Below are positions 17,145 through 32,300 of a DNA stretch of 64,000 nt, in pieces (position 1 is the first letter of the stretch; each line of letters begins with the position of its first letter). The position numbers and the translations under genes are program-made. The notes beneath the pieces are model-generated. The model saw only the letters and a program-made list of their open reading frames with translations. It was not told the DNA's origin and searched no databases. The stretch is from Bispira polyomma (lineage: Eukaryota), in assembly GCA_965649765.1 (NCBI GenBank), contig OZ287748.1, forward strand, positions 68,138,001 to 68,202,000. Reading direction: 5' to 3'.

Positions 17145-20100
17145 CTGTTTGAATACATTAAAAAATGAAAATTTAAGATTTGTTATTAGAATACATTATA
17201 TTTTTATATATTACAGGTCTTATTATTATTATTATTATACATTTTTAACACACTTTGTTGATGCTAGGCATCTTCTAAAGCGCAACAACAGAATCAGTAA
17301 GGAAAACTGTCGGGAAGAGGGAACTAAGGTGGGTAAGCAAGGCTAAATTGATAGCCTTGTACACAATGTATTTATTGCTTATAAAGAAATTAGTTTTACA
17401 TGAGTAATAAGAAATACTGCAGAGAAAAATGTCGTGGTTCTAAGTTAAGCAACCATCATTGTCACATGAGACAGATATAATCATAAGTAAAACAACCTGA
17501 AAACAGCAAGACAAACAAGTAAATCTATATTAGAGTGTTTTTAAAATGTTATCAGTCTTCATAATTATTTACAAAATATACATTTGTTTTCGTACAGTAC
17601 ATGTAAAGGTGATAAATACAGGAGCATGCAATATGTACAAAACAGAGTAGGTAACAGAAAACATGCATATATATTTGTAGTGTAAAATCATGATGCATAG
17701 AATTTGCAAGCAAAAAGTATGGCAAGGCTGCAACTCTGGACTATATGCAAAGTGTTTCAGAAAAGCCAATAAAAGACAATTATACGATATACGATATAGA
17801 ACAAGTGACAATGTAGCAATGCCCAAACCTAATATTTGTTTATGTTTAATATTTTAAGGAAAGCCAAACTTACACAGATACAGCTGTGTACACACTGCTG
17901 TCAAAGGGTGTCTTTGTTTTGTTTTTTCATTAATTTTAACTTTCGTTTTTCTCATGTGTGTCATGTGACAGATGTATATAAAACAGTATGCATTATTGTT
18001 TTATATTATTCCTCAATAGGATATAGCATTGTTTTGGATGTGTTGAAAGGTCTCATGGCAACATTTGGTAAAAAGTGCTTTTTTGGAGTAATACACCGGA
18101 TTATATTGGTCAAACTGTATATTCCCATAGTGTCCTACGGTAAATAGTGTTAGAATACAAATGATATTTTTTCTTATTTGGATCTCTTTCAACAGCTTAG
18201 GACATGTCATGATGACCAGATTCAGTGATAGAAGAAACCAGTGCTGAAGCCACTGTAAACCACCAGCCTATGACAACTTTTATTGGTAAGTACCTCACAA
18301 ACTTTCCTACATGAAAGAACAAACTGGATTTGAACCCACATTGGTGAGAGGTCAACGACTTTAAAGCAGGTGTTTTTAACCACTCGGCCCATCTCTGGCC
18401 AGTGTATTTCTAGCTATCTCTCCCTATATATATCTATAGCCTTACAATTTATCTGTAAAGCCCATGGGCTTTTTTAACTCAGACTTCAGAAAAGTAGGGG
18501 GTGATCTCTCATGCGAATATGGTTGATGTGCCATATGTTTTGTTTTTTTTAATTGGGATATTTAACGTCCACTCTAGTACCTGTTTAGGTTATATTGGGG
18601 ACGGGTAGTTGGAAACGCTGGAGGAAACACTGCATACAGTTAATTAAGGTTCTGCACTGAAACCAGCGGCCCAAAGTAAGGAACTACCACCTTTCCCACA
18701 TAGGCATCGACAGGAGTTGAACCCATGCCAGCCGATCCTAGAGGTGAGAGACCAGTGATTGTGAAGCGCCATGCTTGCTAACCACTAGGCCACCGCAGCC
18801 CCCGGTGTGCCGTATGTAGAGTTTCCTATAATATTAAATATATTGGTATATACTTTGCTGGTGATGGAAACTATACATGGTATTAGTAAGTAATAGATTA
18901 CTCTTTAATGAATCCTTTATATACATATATATACTGGACATATTGGATATTTTTCAAAATTTACTGTGGTATGATATTTTAAGAGATATATCCCCAACAC
19001 CCAACTACAATAATCTAATTACAGTGTACGTTGGCTGATATATATATATTTGAAATGAGTTTTAGTTCATTTAAATAATGTCAAGTTATGTATATATTTA
19101 TATATATATAACACAGGTGACATGGGGCCATTATAAGGTATATCTTTATCCATTTGAACACAGGTGAGATGGTGTCATTATGCAGTATATTTTTATCCAT
19201 TTGAACACAGGTGAGATGGTATCATTATAAAGTATATCTTTATCCATTTGAACACAGGTGAGATGGTGTCATTATAAAGTGTATCTTTATCCATTTGAAC
19301 ACAGGTGACATAGTGTCATTATGAAGTGTATCTTTATCCATTTGAACACAGGTGATATGGTGTCATTTTAAAGTATATCATTATCCATTTGAACACAGGT
19401 GAGATGGTGTCATTATAAAGTATATCTTTATCCATTTAAAAATATCCTGACAGTGTTTGATCATATTTTTCCGCAGTCCATATTTTTACAGACATATGTC
19501 ACAACTTTTTTTAAAATTTAAAGTTAAACTACAACTGTTACAGTGTATACATTATGAATTCTGATTTTTTTTTGAAAGAATAGTAAAACAAAAACTGCAT
19601 TAGAAGTGCTGATCTGTTTTATTGAAACACTCCTTTTGGTAAAGAATATGCGGAACAAGTTATATGTGCTTTTAAGAAATGACTAGTGTAACCCTGTCAA
19701 GTCGAATCTGAAGGGACCATAAACATTTGTTCTACTTCTAACAGAAATTCTACTCAACAGGATACATTTTAATTAGAAATATAGCCATGGTGAGTTTAAA
19801 ATAACTTCAACGGAACAGGTAATTCCACTTATCAGAGTTCTACTTAAAATGGCTTTGACTGTACACCGATACCAAAATATGGACCATCTTGCTAAATTTA
19901 TTACCCCCAGTGATAACAATATAAGCTATTTTGACAAAATTATATACAAATCTAAAAATAAGCCACACAGAAGATACTCCTAATATGTACAGGTGCATGA
20001 GGGGGAGACAATCTATGATTCTATATAATATATATAAATATATATAAATACATGTATGGAGCCCTGGAGGGGACATTGTAAATATTTTTACCCAGATTGA

Positions 20101-23300: not shown

Positions 23301-26300
23301 GAAGACAAAAATTGTATATACATGCACAAAAACTTCACACAAGATTACTTTCACAAAGGAACACAACTACATTGGATAGGAATATTTAAGACAATGCGAC
23401 TGATTTTCATGAAAACAATCACATCACATAAAGAAAGATATCGTAGACAATTGGTGCAGAAAAAAAGGTGTGCAAACCCATAATGTTTGTGTTGTGATGA
23501 TTGGTATTACAACCAACACAATAAAATGAATTAGTAAAAATAAATAGCAACTGGATTAAGATTCTTATTAAGTTATTATATCTTTTAAAGCAGATGATCA
23601 TTGATATTAAGCTTTTTGTGAGAAATCTTGTCTTAAACTCCAAAAGTAAAGTATGTGTGTTCTTAACGGTGTCTCTTAAGAATTTAAACTATCTCATTAA
23701 TATGCCTGCCAATACTGAGACTAAGCCTTGTAATTTCAGATGTATTACATACAATAAGGAATCAAAAATTTTGCCACACAATTATTAATTTGCTATTCAT
23801 TGATCAAGTATTCAGCTACATATAGTATAAAATATCACAAGAAAAAACTTGAAATTTACCACAAGATCATCTTTGAATACTTCGTGGGGAAATTGTGTTA
23901 TGTATTTTTACAGTGACTTATTGATGCGAGACATCTTTTAAAACACAACATCAGAATTAGTTAACTAATAGGGAAGTCCAAAAAATTGCTAAGTTCGTAA
24001 GGAAGGATGTTGGGGGTCTATAAGGAGGGAACTAAGGGGGCTTTGAATAGATGGATTTTAAGCTTTTTCCTAAAACCTTTTTTTTAGGAAAAGAGTTTCG
24101 AGTGAACTAAGCTCAACAGGGAGACTATTCGATAGCATAGGGGCAGCAATAAAGAAAGCTCTAGATCCAGACTTCTTGGTCGGTTTAACAGAGGAAACAG
24201 AAAATCTTTTTCCTCTTGTAAGCTTACTAATTGAAAGGAGGAGCCGCGGTGGCCTAGTGGTTAGTAAGCATTGCGCTTCACAATCACTGGTCTCTCACTT
24301 CTGGGCGGCGTGAGTTCTAATCCCGAGATGTGGGAAAGGTGGTAGTTCCTTACTGTGGGCCGCTGGTTTCAGTGCAGAACCTTGATCAACTGTATGCAGT
24401 GTTTCCTCCAGCATTCCAACTACCCATCCCAATATAACCTAAACAGGTACTAGAGTGGACGTTAAATATCCCAATTAAAAAAAAAAAAACTAATTGAAAG
24501 GAAATATGTATTTAATTTGAGTTAAACACAGTTTTTAACAATTATGTATTTATTATGGCGATGGGCACTTTATTGGTAGAGACAAACAGTACAGGTTATA
24601 GTTGGTCAAGAGTTTTGCACTGTAAAGAACTGACATCCAGCAAGTCTACTACCAACTACTACCACAATGACACTGGTGTAAATAGATTTAATTGCCCCCT
24701 GGTAAAGTTGCCCCCCTCCGGTAACTTAAAATTGATCTTGACTTAAACCCCCTCATGTTCAAATTACACCCATCTTTGTACTTTGTTTTTTCTTTGGGGG
24801 AGGGGTGTTACATCTCTTGTATTATTATTATAGATTTTAAAATTACATTGGGGGGGGATAATGTAAAAGGAGAGCATTTCAAACTGCTACACTAGGGGAT
24901 AAGATTTAAACCCACGTCTGTAGAGGTTGGGAGCCAGAGTGTTACTTCTACGTGACCAAGGTTCTTTGTAGAAGATATGAGTCACTTAGCCACACACTTC
25001 CATAGAAGAGAAATGGTCAATATTTACAATATAAATAGTATGCAATATATTAGTAAAATGGAATGCCCCAAACCATTCATATGTGGCACATGCTTTATAA
25101 AAAGTTTTTTTGTCATAATCTACAAAATCATTAGTTTCTATTTATGTTAACTATATGTGTAATTAAAAGGTGGATCGAAATTTAGAAAAGTATTAAAAGT
25201 ATTATCACAAACAAATCACGATTACATACACAACTGATATAATTTACTTCAAATATATTTTCACAAGAACTTACAAGTTTAAAAATAGCAAATAACAGAT
25301 AAACAAAATATCACAGAACACATAATTAATGGAATACTATTTAGAAAAAAAATACTGATTTGGTTTTTATTCATGAGAATTTTTTTTAAAAAGTTTTACT
25401 ATTGGGAAACAATAACTTAAATTAATTTAATTGATATAAATGAATGAAAATGTAGACTTATACTCACAATTCGTAAAGCTAGCTTTACTATTAACATTTT
25501 AATGGAACTGAACAAAAACCAAATTCAAAGGTGACACAAGTTAACATTTAATTCCCAAAAAGGTAACTGTCAATACATGAAGTGAATATATGACATTACC
25601 TGGGTTTAAATGGAACTGGATTAGTGGAATATGAGCTTAATTCATTGAAACCCTCGAGTAGCTTTGCCACTTAATTAATAAACTTTGGTGAAGCAATGAT
25701 GAATATATTCTATATATATAAAAACAATAATCAATAAAGGAAATTGTACACACATATCGATGTATTTTTAAATAATTGTTTTAAATCGTTTGCAATAACA
25801 TAGTTTTCCGTGATAGTATTTTTTTAAATTTTGACAGTAAAACCTCCATTTTCCGAACATGTTAGAAGAGCAAGATTTTGTTTGGATAATAGAAGGTTCA
25901 TAAAATGGAAGAGATTTGAAAATGTACATTTGAAAGAGTGAAAAATGTGATCATAATATTGAATAATCGGATAACAGAAGTCCATGAAATAGAGTTTCTA
26001 CCACAGGGTTTCAATGAATTTGTATCACAGTGTGAGCCTGTCTTAGAAATGAAAAAAGAAGAAAAAAAATTTTAAGACCAGGCAAACACAGGGTACCAGT
26101 CTTGCCTAAGCTGAGGAAAGGAGAAACGTGCACAGGATACCTGTTCATGCTATCATGAGAAGGTAATGACCTTGAAGTGGATCCAATGTGACACCGAACA
26201 TCTTTGGAGGTTGTGAACGCGGAGCGGTTGTTCCTCTCTGGCTTGCACACAATGATGTAGATCTTGGGAAAGAATAACAGGACTAGAGCCACGGTGGCAC

Positions 26301-29300
26301 TGAGAGTGATAGCTAGGCACATGGTGATCACCTGAAACATATACATGTACATAGTGGTCACCTGAAACATATACATGTACATAGTGATCACCTGAAACAT
26401 AAATAGTACTAGGACTAGAGCCACAGTGACACTGAGGGTGATATCTAGGCACATGGTGATCACCTGAAACATAAACAACAGGACTAGAGGCAAACTGATA
26501 CTGTGATAGCTAGGAACATGGTGATCACCTGAAACATATACATAGTGATCACCTGAAACATTAACATGTACAAAGTGGTCACCTGAGCTATAATTACTAC
26601 TACTAGAGCCACAGTGGCACTGAGTGTGATAGCTCGGCACATAGTGATCACCTAAAAAATATGCATGTACATAGTGATCACCTAAAACATATATATGTAC
26701 ATAGTGATCACCTAAAACATATTTATGTACATAGTGATCACCTAAAACATGAACAACAGGACTAGAGGCACAGTGACACTGAGTGTGATAGCTAGGCACA
26801 CAGTGATCACCGAAAACATATACATGTACATAGTGGTCACCTGAAACATGAACAACAGGACTAGAGCCACAGTGACACTGAGTGTGATAGCTAGGCACAT
26901 AGTGATCACCTGGATTTGAATTTGAATTTGGATATTTAACGTCCACTCTAGTACCTTTTAGTAGGTTATATTGGGACGGGTAGTTGGAAACGCTGGAGGA
27001 AACACTGCATACAGTTGGTCAAGGTTCTGCACTGAAACAAGCGGCCCACCATAAGGAACTACCACCTTTCCCACATAGGCATCGACGGGATTCAAACTCA
27101 CCCAGAGGTGAGAGACCAGTGATTGTGAAACGCAATGCTTGCTAACCACTAGGCCAACGCGGCCCCTGGTGATCCCCTGGAACATATACATGTACATAGT
27201 GGTCACCTTAAACAGATGTGGACATTTTTGTTACTAATAATTTATATTACTATATAACATAAAGTAACACTGTGACAAGATAATCTTTTTCGTGACTAAT
27301 ATATGTTCTTGTGTAGATTTACCACTGTCAGACTGATAGATTATTGTGTAAACAATACTGGCACCAGCTTTTGCCATAAACTTGTTGGAAAAACTACAAA
27401 ACAGTACATTTCTTTATCAATATACACAGGATCCCTTCACAGGTTTTTTTAGAACTAAGGAAGCAGTTTTCTTTATGTGATGAGACATTTGTGTGTCAGG
27501 ATCATCCATGGTGGGGTTGAACCTTTTTACCATATTATACCTGTAACAATTACCAACTACCTAGAGATGAAGCAAAAATAGGACATTTGGAATTACATTT
27601 TAATGTGGTATGTGGACAAAGTCCTCCCCGCCCCCCGCCACATGAAAATTGAAATAGCACAAACATATCAGTAATACTGTAACAATAATAGAGTGAGGGA
27701 TTTACATTCTAGCCTCACTTGCTCATCATATATCTTTAATATGTTTTTGTATTTTGCATTTTGAAATGCGAGGCATCTTCTAAAGTGCAACGACAGAATC
27801 ATGGATGGAAGGATGTGGGTGTGTGTAGAGAGGGAATTAAAGGGGCAATCAAGTTCTATGATATAGGTTTTAAGTTTACTCGAAAACCCAGAAAGTGTTT
27901 CTATTGATTTAAGCTCAACAAAGACATCATTCCATAAGATAGGGGCAGCAACAAAGAAAACTGAAGATCCAATATGGCAGTGGAGGAGTTCTGTTATACA
28001 ATCCACAAATCATACATGATGTTATATGGCATGTACTTCTTAAATAGAAGAAAATATTACCTTGCACCACTATTGGTTTGTTATTGGTATGTAGACTAAA
28101 ACAAATCATACACACTGAAAAATTTTGAGAAAGAAGGCTAAGGCTAGGAGGATATGTATGTCATAGAAACATGAGTAATGACTCGTGCATGTTTACAAAA
28201 CCCTGGATGTTTCCCCAGCCATACCCATGATGTGACCAGTTATATTTACAAGCTCATGCGTCAGCCGATAATACAGCATTATTTATAGGCATTGTCTGTA
28301 GGCCTACACTTAAGAGCAAATAATGAGAAAAAGATCCAGAGGACAAAAAATAGTCGAAGGCTTATTGTTATGATTAACATACAACAGTCAATCCCAGAAA
28401 CAACCCTGACAGCAATATGTTCTATAATTGAACCTCTCAAATATGATATAGTTGAACCATCGAATATGATATAGTTAAACCCTAAAATATTATATAGTTG
28501 GACCCTCAAATATGATATAGTTAAACCCCTCAAATATTATACAGTTCAATATCTCAACATTATTTAGTTGAACACCTCAAACATTATATAGTTCAACCCT
28601 CAAATATTATATAGTTCAACCCTCAACTATGATATAGTTGAACCCCTCAAATATTTCACAGTTGAATATCTCAAAACATTATATAGTTAAACCCCTCAAC
28701 ACTTTATATAGTTGAACACCTCATACATTATAGAGTTGAACCCCATCTTTAACGTCAAGGGGCTGGGATAACTTAAGCAGGATTTCCACTTCACATGGTA
28801 GATTGTACTAGACAAGCCCGTAGTTGGACTATTGGCTTTTACATAACAAATTTACTTTAAACTGATTCATCTTTCATTCAATTCTTGTCATCAAACAAAG
28901 GGAAAATTGTTATAATCGTTACTTGTTAATTACAAAATATTTATAACACTATTAAATAATATAAAGGGAGGATTAACATATTTTTTACAAAATAATAAAA
29001 AAATTTATACAAAAATTTCAAAATTTAGAGATAAATATTTAACAATACAAAAGTGTAATTTGAAAAAAAAATCCAGATATATAGTTTGCCAAACATTCAT
29101 AGTAGAACAAGAGTTATATGTGTAACTTGCACAAATCTTTAAATACTGCAGGTAATGTAACAATATTTGCAAAACGAAAAGTATTCAAATTGCACCATTC
29201 TTCTTCTTTGATATTACTTATCAATTATATAAAACTACATACATCATTACTTTTTGTAAGATATATTAAACATATAATTGTTTGTCTCACCTTGTTGTCA

Positions 29301-32300
29301 CTACCAAAATAGATGGGTACAAATGCTGTCCATATGACACAAGTGGTGTACATGGTGAATCCTATGAACTTGGCCTCGTTGAAGTTTTCAGGCAGGTTCC
29401 TGGTCTTGATGGCATAGAGTGTGCACATGACTATCAGGAAGATGTCGAACCCCAAGGGCACGATGATGCCGATGGTGGAGGCATTGCATGCCAGCCTCAC
29501 TCTGGTTTTTACTGGGTAGATCAGCTGGGAGTCTGCTGGTTCCATAATGAGCATGACTGTGATGATGGCACACTCTATGCCAATGATAATGAAGGTGATG
29601 ACCACCTGTGCTGAGGCGCTCATGAACCTTGGCTTGCGGGTCATGATCTTCTTCTTACTCCCGGCCAGGATACGGGCAATGCGGTTTGTCTTGGTCACCA
29701 GAGCGCCATAGATGAGTGAAAAGGAGAACCCGGGAAGAATTCTGGTTAAGTAGCATGTGACTAGAGATGGTTTGGCCACCAGAGGGAATGTGGTCAGGAA
29801 CGAAGTACAAATGCCGACCAGTATGATGTAGCTGAGTTCTCGGGTAGATGCCTTCACCACTGGAGTATTGTTGTGGCGGATGAAGACCAGACCAACCCAG
29901 CCAGTTACAAAGACCCCTGTGCAGGCAAATACCATGGCAATTATGGCTTCGGTGTCCCCCCATTGCATAAACTCTATCATAATCATGTCACAGGCTGGAA
30001 AAATATGATATAACAAAGCGTTGCCTTTTAAATAAGACATAGGTACACAACGTGAAATACACTAACAGTGATATGACCACTATTTACTATTTAAGGATAG
30101 CTTGTCACCCCTACAAATATTAATCTTATACTACTCAGTTTGGACAGGTCGTTTGCTTCCAACCAATCTATAAAGGCCTAACACATTTTTTTCTGAGATG
30201 GCAGTGCCCTTTTGAAATAATGGCAGTTCCCTTTTCAGAATAAAAACGATATCAGGCTTCGCCTGATAAAAATGCGAACAAAAAAGTGTACAGTATTGAT
30301 CTTTTAAATATAGAAGGCACTGGTAAAGTTATAAAAATACAACAAGTACAGCTTCTTTCTGACATTTTAAGTTTCCTGACAAAATGCCACCATTAGTACA
30401 TTAGTTGTACTTAATTGCATCTTATTTTTTAGCAGCAAGTTCCTTTTTGGTAAATATAGACACAGATGACTTTGCTAATGAAGAGGCAGTAGCAGTCTTT
30501 TGTCCGCATATTGCAGCAGCAATTATGAAACACCATTGTCATTTGATGAGAACTTCCCACATCATTTTTTTTTTTTTTTTGTCAACGTGAAGAAAGTAAC
30601 AAACCAAGGATTCAAATTTGGAATGTTCTCATGATTGCAAGTAATTGCCATGTTATGTTTTCTACAGTGAGGGAGGCACAGAAGATTGATTTTAGTGGTC
30701 AGAAAATACAGAAATTTGAGAAGCAATTAATTAGTAATTGAGAAAATTTAATAAACATTGTTTATATGGATACGGAAGAGTATAAGAGGCAACCTTTTTT
30801 CTTTCTTTTTTTTTACAAGGACCAACTTTTATATGTAATGTTTTGGGGAATTCCAGAGATAATATCTCGATAAATTAAGATAAATTATCTCGGCAAATAA
30901 AAAAAATAAATAAAAAATTGGCCCTTATGCTCTTCCAGTCTTTTGTCGACATATTATCTTGATAAACCGAGATAATTAAGGACCAACTTTTTAAAAACTT
31001 TTCTTAATTGTCGACATGTTATCTTGACAATTATCCACCATAGAGAAGGAATCTATGTGAGTGGCCAACTGAACAGCCAACATGGAGAAGGGTACAAACA
31101 GTCATAGGGTCAAAAGCTAATCAGCAAAGAGTCATGGGGTCAAAAGTTCATCAGCAAACAGTCATGGGGTCAAAAGTTGATCAGCAAACAGTTATGGGGT
31201 CAAAAGTAGTTAATCAGGGCGAGACACAAAACGATATAGAGATCAAAAGCAGATAATCAGGGAAAGACACAAAACAACATAGAGGTCAAAAGTAGTTAAT
31301 TTGGGCCAGACACAAACAGTCATCGGTCAAAAGTAGTCAATCAGGGCAAGACGCAAAACAGTCATAGAGGTCAAAAGTAGTTAATCAGGGAAAGACACAA
31401 AACAGTCATAGAGGTCAAAAGTAGTAAATCACGGAAAGACACAAAACAACATAGAGGTCAAAAGTAGTTAATCAGGGCCAGACACAAAACGACATAGAGG
31501 TCAAAAGTAGTTAATTAGGGCAAGACACAAACAGTCACAGGTCAAAACTAGTTAATCAGGGCGAGACGCAAAACAGTCATAGAGGTCAAAAGTAGTTAAT
31601 CAGGGAAAGACACAAAATGACATAGAGGTCAAAAGAAGTTAATTAGGGCAAGACACAAACAGTCATAGGTCAAAAGTAGTTAATCAGGGAAAGACACAAA
31701 ACAGTCATAGAGGTCAAAAGTAGTTAATCAGCCAACAGTCATAGGGTCAAAAGTAGTTAATCAGAGCGAGACGCAAAACAGTCATAGAGGTCAAAAGTAG
31801 TTAATCAGGGCAAGACACAAAACGACATAGAGGTCAAAAGTAGTTAATTAGGGCAAGACACAAACAGTCACAGGTCAAAAGTAGTTAATCAGGCTTTTTA
31901 CAAAAGTCAGTTTCAACAAAATCGGTCAGTATTTGTCAATTTAGTTACATAAAGTATTGTATATTGGAACATTTTATGTCAATAATATGTAAACTATTGT
32001 ATATGGAAAAATAAAATATATTATACACAAAAAAATACAAATTATTGGCCCTTGTAAAAAAAGAAAAGAAAAAAGGTTGACCCTTTATATTTATATCTTA
32101 AAAATAATTCAAACATTTAAACACAATTTGAGGCTCTGTATAATTTATTGAAGGCAAGCTCTGTACATGTTTTAAATTTGGTGCAGATATCTGCAACACT
32201 GGCCGTTAAAAACTCAAAACTAATGAGCTTAAACAGTCTTAGCTTTAAAGTTTTGTGAATAGGGATACAGATTAACTACACTTTTGATTACCCTTTTCCA

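Follow-up and report, generated by a model that had tools for sequence, protein, structure and literature searches.

Which acceptor does a gene use when one of its exons is preceded by a long row of near-identical copies of its own intron/exon junction? This question is raised by a 64,000-nt stretch of the Bispira polyomma genome (assembly GCA_965649765.1, contig OZ287748.1, positions 68,138,001 to 68,202,000; hereafter the window), which carries a metabotropic glutamate receptor (mGluR) gene with such a row before the exon of its seventh transmembrane helix (TM7). All coordinates are positions in the window, and the gene and the array both lie on the minus strand. Minisatellite-like tandem duplications of an exon/intron boundary are known as mirages in amphioxus, where they were found in Adh3, the globins BflGb6 and BflGb9, troponin C, and PGBD5 (PMC3087553, PMC3902484). 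In this study, we believe that the array is probably a mirage, a tolerated by-product of slippage with no selected function, that the true acceptor at 26331 dominates, and that leaks to the out-of-frame copies would be targets of nonsense-mediated decay (NMD).

Every AG in the region 27400-26300 was listed and translated in the phase of the donor, and the region was cut at each junction copy. Two types of unit, one of 30 nt and one of 69 nt, make up the array (26332-27206), and variants of 24, 65, and 72 nt also occur. The 30-nt unit consists of the first 13 nt of the exon and the last 17 nt of the intron, and the 69-nt unit of the first 60 nt of the exon and the last 9 nt of the intron. There were 16 junction starts including the true one, and 15 of them had AG (14 decoys and the true acceptor 26331), in agreement with the earlier note, which had counted about 14 duplicated acceptors before the TM7 exon. 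The copies start at 27206, 27176, 26909, 26840, 26810, 26741, 26711, 26681, 26651, 26582, 26552, 26528, 26463, 26391, and 26361; the copy at 26810 reads CG in place of AG and is a dead junction. Four units terminate in an in-frame TAG. Tandem Repeats Finder (TRF) gave periods of 30, 99, and 159 at 83-95%, which indicates that the array is not a product of chance, and the units are mutually diverged (77-95%). When the genome was searched with the array, the only match was the array itself, and no second genomic copy or paralogue was found in the genome as its source. The structure is that of a mirage: the units lie head to tail across the host exon/intron boundary, are imperfect and of minisatellite size (24-72 nt), and keep AG in 14 of the 15 copies, while the copies are intronic and the authentic exon is intact at the array end.

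The receptor exons were searched one by one against Pfam and PDB. The host gene is a single-copy class C G protein-coupled receptor (GPCR) of the group I (mGluR1/5) type, and its several paralogues in the genome are more distant. Eight exons were mapped in the window with full-length homologues. Relatives with a species name came from Owenia (77% identity) and Tubulanus (74% identity). The exon for TM1 to TM6 (29291-29994; acceptor at 29994, donor AAG/GTGAGA, phase 0) matched Pfam 7tm_3 with an E value of 4e-61, and its E values against mGluR5, mGluR1, and mGluR2 in the PDB were 6e-84, 7e-82, and 2e-59, respectively. It is followed by a lineage-restricted intron of 2959 nt (26332-29290) between the third extracellular loop (ECL3) and TM7, and then by the true exon of TM7 and the proximal tail (26141-26331, 191 nt; donor CAG/GTATCC, phase 2), which matched residues 805-859 of mGluR5 (E value 1e-16) in direct continuation of the preceding exon. 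The class C seven-transmembrane domain nearest to mGluR1/5, together with a tail start of the group I type past TM7, places the gene in group I.

The array is lineage-specific, because a relative with a 95% identical protein (two contigs) has the same intron with a length of 637 nt, a single acceptor, and no junction copies. Most relatives of 80-86% identity read straight through the junction and thus have no intron there. Among group I mGluRs, the intron before TM7 (29291/26331) is patchy (P0001, P0010, P0030, P0055, and P0056 versus P0002-P0009) and sits at an AAG/GT proto-splice site; to judge from these sequences, recurrent intron gain or loss is possible. In a more distant animal (L050:1-220), a 44-nt unit is repeated at the homologous TM7 acceptor, in at least five copies. 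This unit contains 13 exon bases, ending at the same Met codon as the exon part of the 30-nt unit, and an unrelated intron part; it is out of frame, and the exon at the array end is intact. From the sequence of its units, that array is of independent origin.

Arrays of this kind were also found elsewhere in the genome. We mapped 20 exons of three unselected paralogous receptors and tested their 40 edges, which are approximate. Tandem junction copies were present on the intron side at 5 of the 40, with spacings of 40, 41-42, 52, 55-58, 83, and 90 nt. For example, the TM7 exon of one paralogue (at about 5442960-5444200 of C4) has copies on both sides, about 4 of the acceptor and 16 of the donor, at 41-42 nt, another exon of the same paralogue has 4 donor copies, and a further edge carries a 9-copy acceptor array with 40-nt units. 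A 52-nt, 37-copy array was seen elsewhere in the genome. About 10% of random intron points lie inside some repeat, the same as the share of exon edges with copies. Only 1.7% of random points lie in the terminal unit on a given side, which makes an excess of about 7-fold at exon edges (binomial p 5e-4, a rough value given the approximate edges and non-independent points). We can therefore say firmly that junction arrays are common at exon edges of this genome and, more softly, that they are enriched there. Because 5 of the 40 paralogue edges bear copies and an unrelated array stands at the homologous acceptor of another animal, the array is not special to this receptor. The genome is generally rich in minisatellite repeats of such kind, and the host gene has further intronic ones away from exon edges, at 28423-28744, 31095-31893, and 19110-19437 (23, 43, and 47 nt, respectively).

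Compared with the true exon, the 69-nt copies have four shared synonymous differences and one shared A>V difference, and the relative agrees with the copies at codon 9, so the true exon changed after the duplication. The changes private to single TM7 copies comprise five replacements (M>V, C>F, L>R, A>D, and A>P) and one or two synonymous changes, close to the neutral site ratio of 43:17, whereas the true TM7 exon differs from the relative in 22 synonymous codons and 1 non-synonymous codon. The sole in-frame helix copy bears the Asp. These patterns suggest that the TM7 copies decay in a near neutral manner. As for selection on the AG itself, 1 of the 16 junctions has lost it, the same as at neighbouring positions, which is uninformative.

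The array has also tolerated an insertion. A short interspersed element (SINE) of 253 nt (26914-27166) was inserted into a 69-nt unit. It differs by 2.4% from a consensus built on 11 other copies, and over 2000 candidate copies exist in the genome, the best of which are 94-96% identical. The element is short, high-copy, and interspersed, with a simple-repeat tail and a target-site duplication (TSD); A/B-box-like motifs were recognized in its head by eye only, and an Rfam scan gave no match. The 5' copy of the TSD (27167-27180, 14 nt) has 12 of 14 letters equal to the 3' copy (26913-26900). Junction 27176 is therefore a TSD copy of 26909 and not an independent unit, and the SINE explains the 267-nt gap between the two. 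Because the SINE lies inside a unit and its TSD duplicated one junction, the array is older than the insertion and tolerated it.

The predicted products of the decoys fall into two groups. The two 30-nt units next to the exon (26332-26391) are in frame, and the use of acceptors 26361 or 26391 would lengthen ECL3 by 10 or 20 residues. The 72-nt unit behind them (26392-26463) is also in frame and encodes a TM7-like segment with an Ala-to-Asp change, whose Kyte-Doolittle 19-mer value is 2.44 compared with 2.50 in the true TM7. The frames of these three acceptors (+30, +60, and +132 nt) and their peptides (VTTMYMYMFQ, VITMYMYMFQ, and the TM7-like helix) were reproduced as the earlier note had given them. 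The following 65-nt unit (26464-26528) is 4 nt shorter than the 69-nt type and shifts the register of all upstream acceptors, again as had been claimed: all 11 upstream AG sites (27206, 27176, 26909, 26840, 26741, 26711, 26681, 26651, 26582, 26552, and 26528) are in one other register. In this part of the array (26528-27206, with the dead CG copy 26810), every AG would lead to a stop, at a distance of 345-819 nt from the exon junction that follows; the use of 26909, for example, gives a 55-residue peptide with a stop at 26744, in line with the tailless receptor proposed before. Because no stop is closer than 345 nt to the junction downstream of it, the out-of-frame products are predicted NMD targets, and the NMD fate suggested for them fits this geometry.

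The following course of events would account for these results. A minisatellite may have arisen when slippage or unequal exchange took place across the intron/exon boundary, probably aided by the repeated ATGT microhomologies on both sides of the junction. Its later expansion, its partial homogenization, and the hit by the SINE, in this lineage only, can be read from the comparisons above. By precedent, the spliceosome would mainly use the last acceptor, 26331, which is joined to the unique exon body and is nearest to the downstream donor (exon definition). Transcripts that leak to the 11 out-of-frame copies would carry a premature stop long before the next junction, a geometry seen directly in the array, and would presumably be removed by NMD. 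If the three in-frame copies leak as well, a few receptors may have an extended ECL3 or an additional, misfolded helix, as tolerated noise. We favour a tolerated mirage because the array fits the published definition and size, is absent from the relative, belongs to a class common at exon edges, shows neutral decay, and has tolerated a SINE.

With regard to acceptor choice, two candidate selectors were rejected. Local acceptor strength does not distinguish the true site, since positions -17 to -1 are the same in 26331 and 26361 and several decoys have a richer pyrimidine tract. The array folds better than shuffled sequences (z -3.37), which is expected from its repeated palindromes GTGATCAC and ATGTACAT, and 26331 is predicted to be no more accessible than the decoys, so RNA structure was also discarded as a selector. 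The site 26331 stands out in that it is joined to the unique exon body and lies close to the donor at 26141, and this points to exon definition. It had been proposed, as one of two options, that the cell picks the last acceptor by an unusual mechanism; no such mechanism is needed, as the use of the exon-adjacent copy is documented for repeats of this kind (PMC3087553, PMC1557585, PMC7490669).

Several points nevertheless weigh against a purely tolerated mirage. Every unit length except one is divisible by three, as are 14 of the 15 spacings. Acceptors 26361 and 26331 lie no more than 30 nt from each other and share the final 17 bases of the intron, and some leak to 26361 is physically likely. 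The dominance of 26331 is deduced from the requirement that the TM7 exon be intact and conserved. In human CBS, moreover, acceptor choice reportedly needs a silencer, according to the title of a reference cited in PMC7490669.

One alternative is that the in-frame acceptors are appreciably used, so that ECL3 gains 10 or 20 residues, or 44 residues that include a further hydrophobic helix, and signalling is altered. The three nearest decoys are in frame and free of stops, their acceptor sequences are the same or nearly the same as the true one, each 30-nt unit has a branch-like GTGAY at -27, and the spacings keep the frame as stated. The extra segment is also hydrophobic enough for a membrane span, and the eighth-helix product of the earlier note is thus possible on paper, without a sign of selection. 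However, most spacings trace to two founder lengths, the copies lack the PKIY end of TM7, and their decay is of a neutral type, the one helix copy in frame having an Asp. The relative has no such array, and most of the arrays seen elsewhere in this genome or at the homologous site do not keep the reading frame. The idea of isoforms or an eighth helix received no positive support: the TM7 copies mostly carry private mutations that change amino acids, with charged residues or proline in mid-helix, the array is missing from a close relative, and many other exon edges bear arrays of the same sort, whose unit lengths are mostly not divisible by three. We consider appreciable use of the in-frame acceptors unlikely.

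A bolder form of this alternative is that the TM7 acceptor of lophotrochozoan mGluRs is a recurrent mirage seed, as in this gene, the paralogue, and the other animal, and that the in-frame +30 and +60 copies are used in neurons to produce a ladder of ECL3-extended isoforms specific to the species, the upstream copies being cleared by NMD or re-splicing. Such a ladder would be a mirage caught in becoming alternative exon sequence, and we regard it as speculative and doubtful.

Recursive rescue is quite improbable. Here, splicing to a decoy would regenerate a donor (YAG/GTGA; AAG/GTGATC or AAG/GTGACC), which would be re-spliced to 26331, or a unit would behave as a cassette exon, so that errors correct themselves. 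It is favoured by the GT that follows 14 AG-bearing junctions (the TSD copy excepted), and the ratchet points of Drosophila are tandem acceptor-donor pairs (PMC8605326). However, no copy has G at +5, whereas the four GTG-type donors examined in the gene family are all GTGAG (a small sample), and the correct mRNA junction is itself AAG/GTGATC, so an active regenerated donor would delete TM7 too. Such sites are suppressed by the exon junction complex (PMC8184009). Ratchet points are ultraconserved sites found in long introns (PMC8605326), whereas the array is lineage-specific and lies in a 3-kb intron. The other arrays in this genome have AG/GA, and the last steps of 30 nt are below the minimal intron of roughly 60 nt (PMC3265369). 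Of the hallmarks of a ratchet point, the copies thus have the tandem AG/GT but neither a strong regenerated donor nor cross-species conservation.

We also assessed the array in contigs from three DNA sequencing runs of two samples of one study; the samples are possibly one animal, and the runs may be the assembly's own source. The contigs of the three runs spanned 25900-26364 and 26341-26798 unbroken, with no letter different from the assembly. The depths on the array contig were 17.5, 12.8, and 55, compared with 13-18, 7-14, and 70-77 on the flanks, respectively. Only two 31-mers are repeated inside the array, and these cause the contig breaks; the block order between them rests on the assembly. 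Among the matches listed, no second allele or copy-number variant was found, a weak test with two samples of one study and SINE matches crowding the listing. These data bear on the suggestion that copy-number polymorphism tunes the receptor dose among individuals through NMD or isoform leak. Amphioxus mirages are unstable in length (PMC3087553), and human junction repeats of variable number (VNTRs) are polymorphic, e.g., the 31-bp VNTR of CBS (PMC2630376). However, the two samples share an unbroken 458-nt contig over ten acceptors without differences (again one study and possibly one animal), and the divergence of the units (77-95%) slows turnover; dose tuning is very improbable. An assembly artefact is hardly credible and already largely refuted, for although tandem repeats are easily mis-assembled and the three runs may be the assembly's source, the units are diverged from one another and broken by a SINE with its TSD, and the array is present, letter for letter over 25900-26798 at about single-copy depth, in contigs built independently of the assembly.

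Two further features of the gene lie on the other side of the TM7 exon. The intron 3' of it contains a probable 36-nt alternative exon (25635-25600, minus strand), which is also found in the 95% identical relative (L025:12815-12850 and L026:12788-12823). In both species it has equal length, an open phase-2 frame, an AAG acceptor, and a CAG/GTAATG donor, with conserved non-coding blocks beside it at about 25660-25636 and 25530-25505; relative L048 gave no informative match. It would give the proximal tail 12 extra residues, and vertebrate mGluR1 and mGluR5 are alternatively spliced near the matching site of the proximal tail. Compared with the array, this exon is probably a better candidate for alternative splicing. 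Past the weak donor of the TM7 exon, the initial 30-40 bases of the intron (26140-26100) are also kept in the relative (L025:11520-11560), which suggests a splicing element, or a retained or extended form of the exon.

As a single locus, the array is of minor weight, one more mirage among many in the genome. Its value would be that of a natural test bed: with 15 consecutive 3' splice sites that are nearly identical, of which three decoys keep the frame and eleven do not, it could show how an invertebrate spliceosome ranks identical acceptors. Should the in-frame leak prove real and regulated, a minisatellite would here have lengthened a GPCR loop. The frequent seeding of arrays at exon edges of this animal is a question at the level of the genome.

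The nearest known systems are the amphioxus mirages. BflGb6 has the same polarity as the present array, that is, the 3' end of the intron and a 5' part of the exon, and the two systems share units within 10-160 nt, many but not all copies with AG/GT, and local homogenization of neighbouring units. The present array differs in its host, a lophotrochozoan GPCR gene, in its two interleaved unit types and the SINE inside, and in having more copies than BflGb6 (3-6). For the amphioxus mirages, regular splicing was shown by RT-PCR (PMC3087553, PMC3902484) and length instability was reported (PMC3087553). Similarly, the 37-bp VNTR in intron 7 of human F7 forms a row of functional but silent donors, of which the exon-adjacent site is used (PMC1557585). 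It and the 31-bp VNTR of CBS (PMC2630376) resemble the present array as rows of near-identical splice sites derived from an exon-boundary minisatellite. Both are on the donor side, whereas this array is on the acceptor side, where branch point choice also counts, and it could serve as the acceptor-side counterpart of the F7 donor study. In the human CBS 844ins68 allele, the intron end (52 nt) and the exon start (16 nt) are duplicated, and splicing takes place at the downstream acceptor and thereby removes the insert (PMC7490669); that duplication is single and polymorphic, whereas about 14 copies are present here and no second allele was seen. The Drosophila ratchet points (PMC8605326, PMC8184009) share the tandem AG/GT junction with the array, but they are ultraconserved, single, in long introns, and equipped with strong donors, in contrast to the lineage-specific copies with GTGAT or GTGAC of the present receptor gene.

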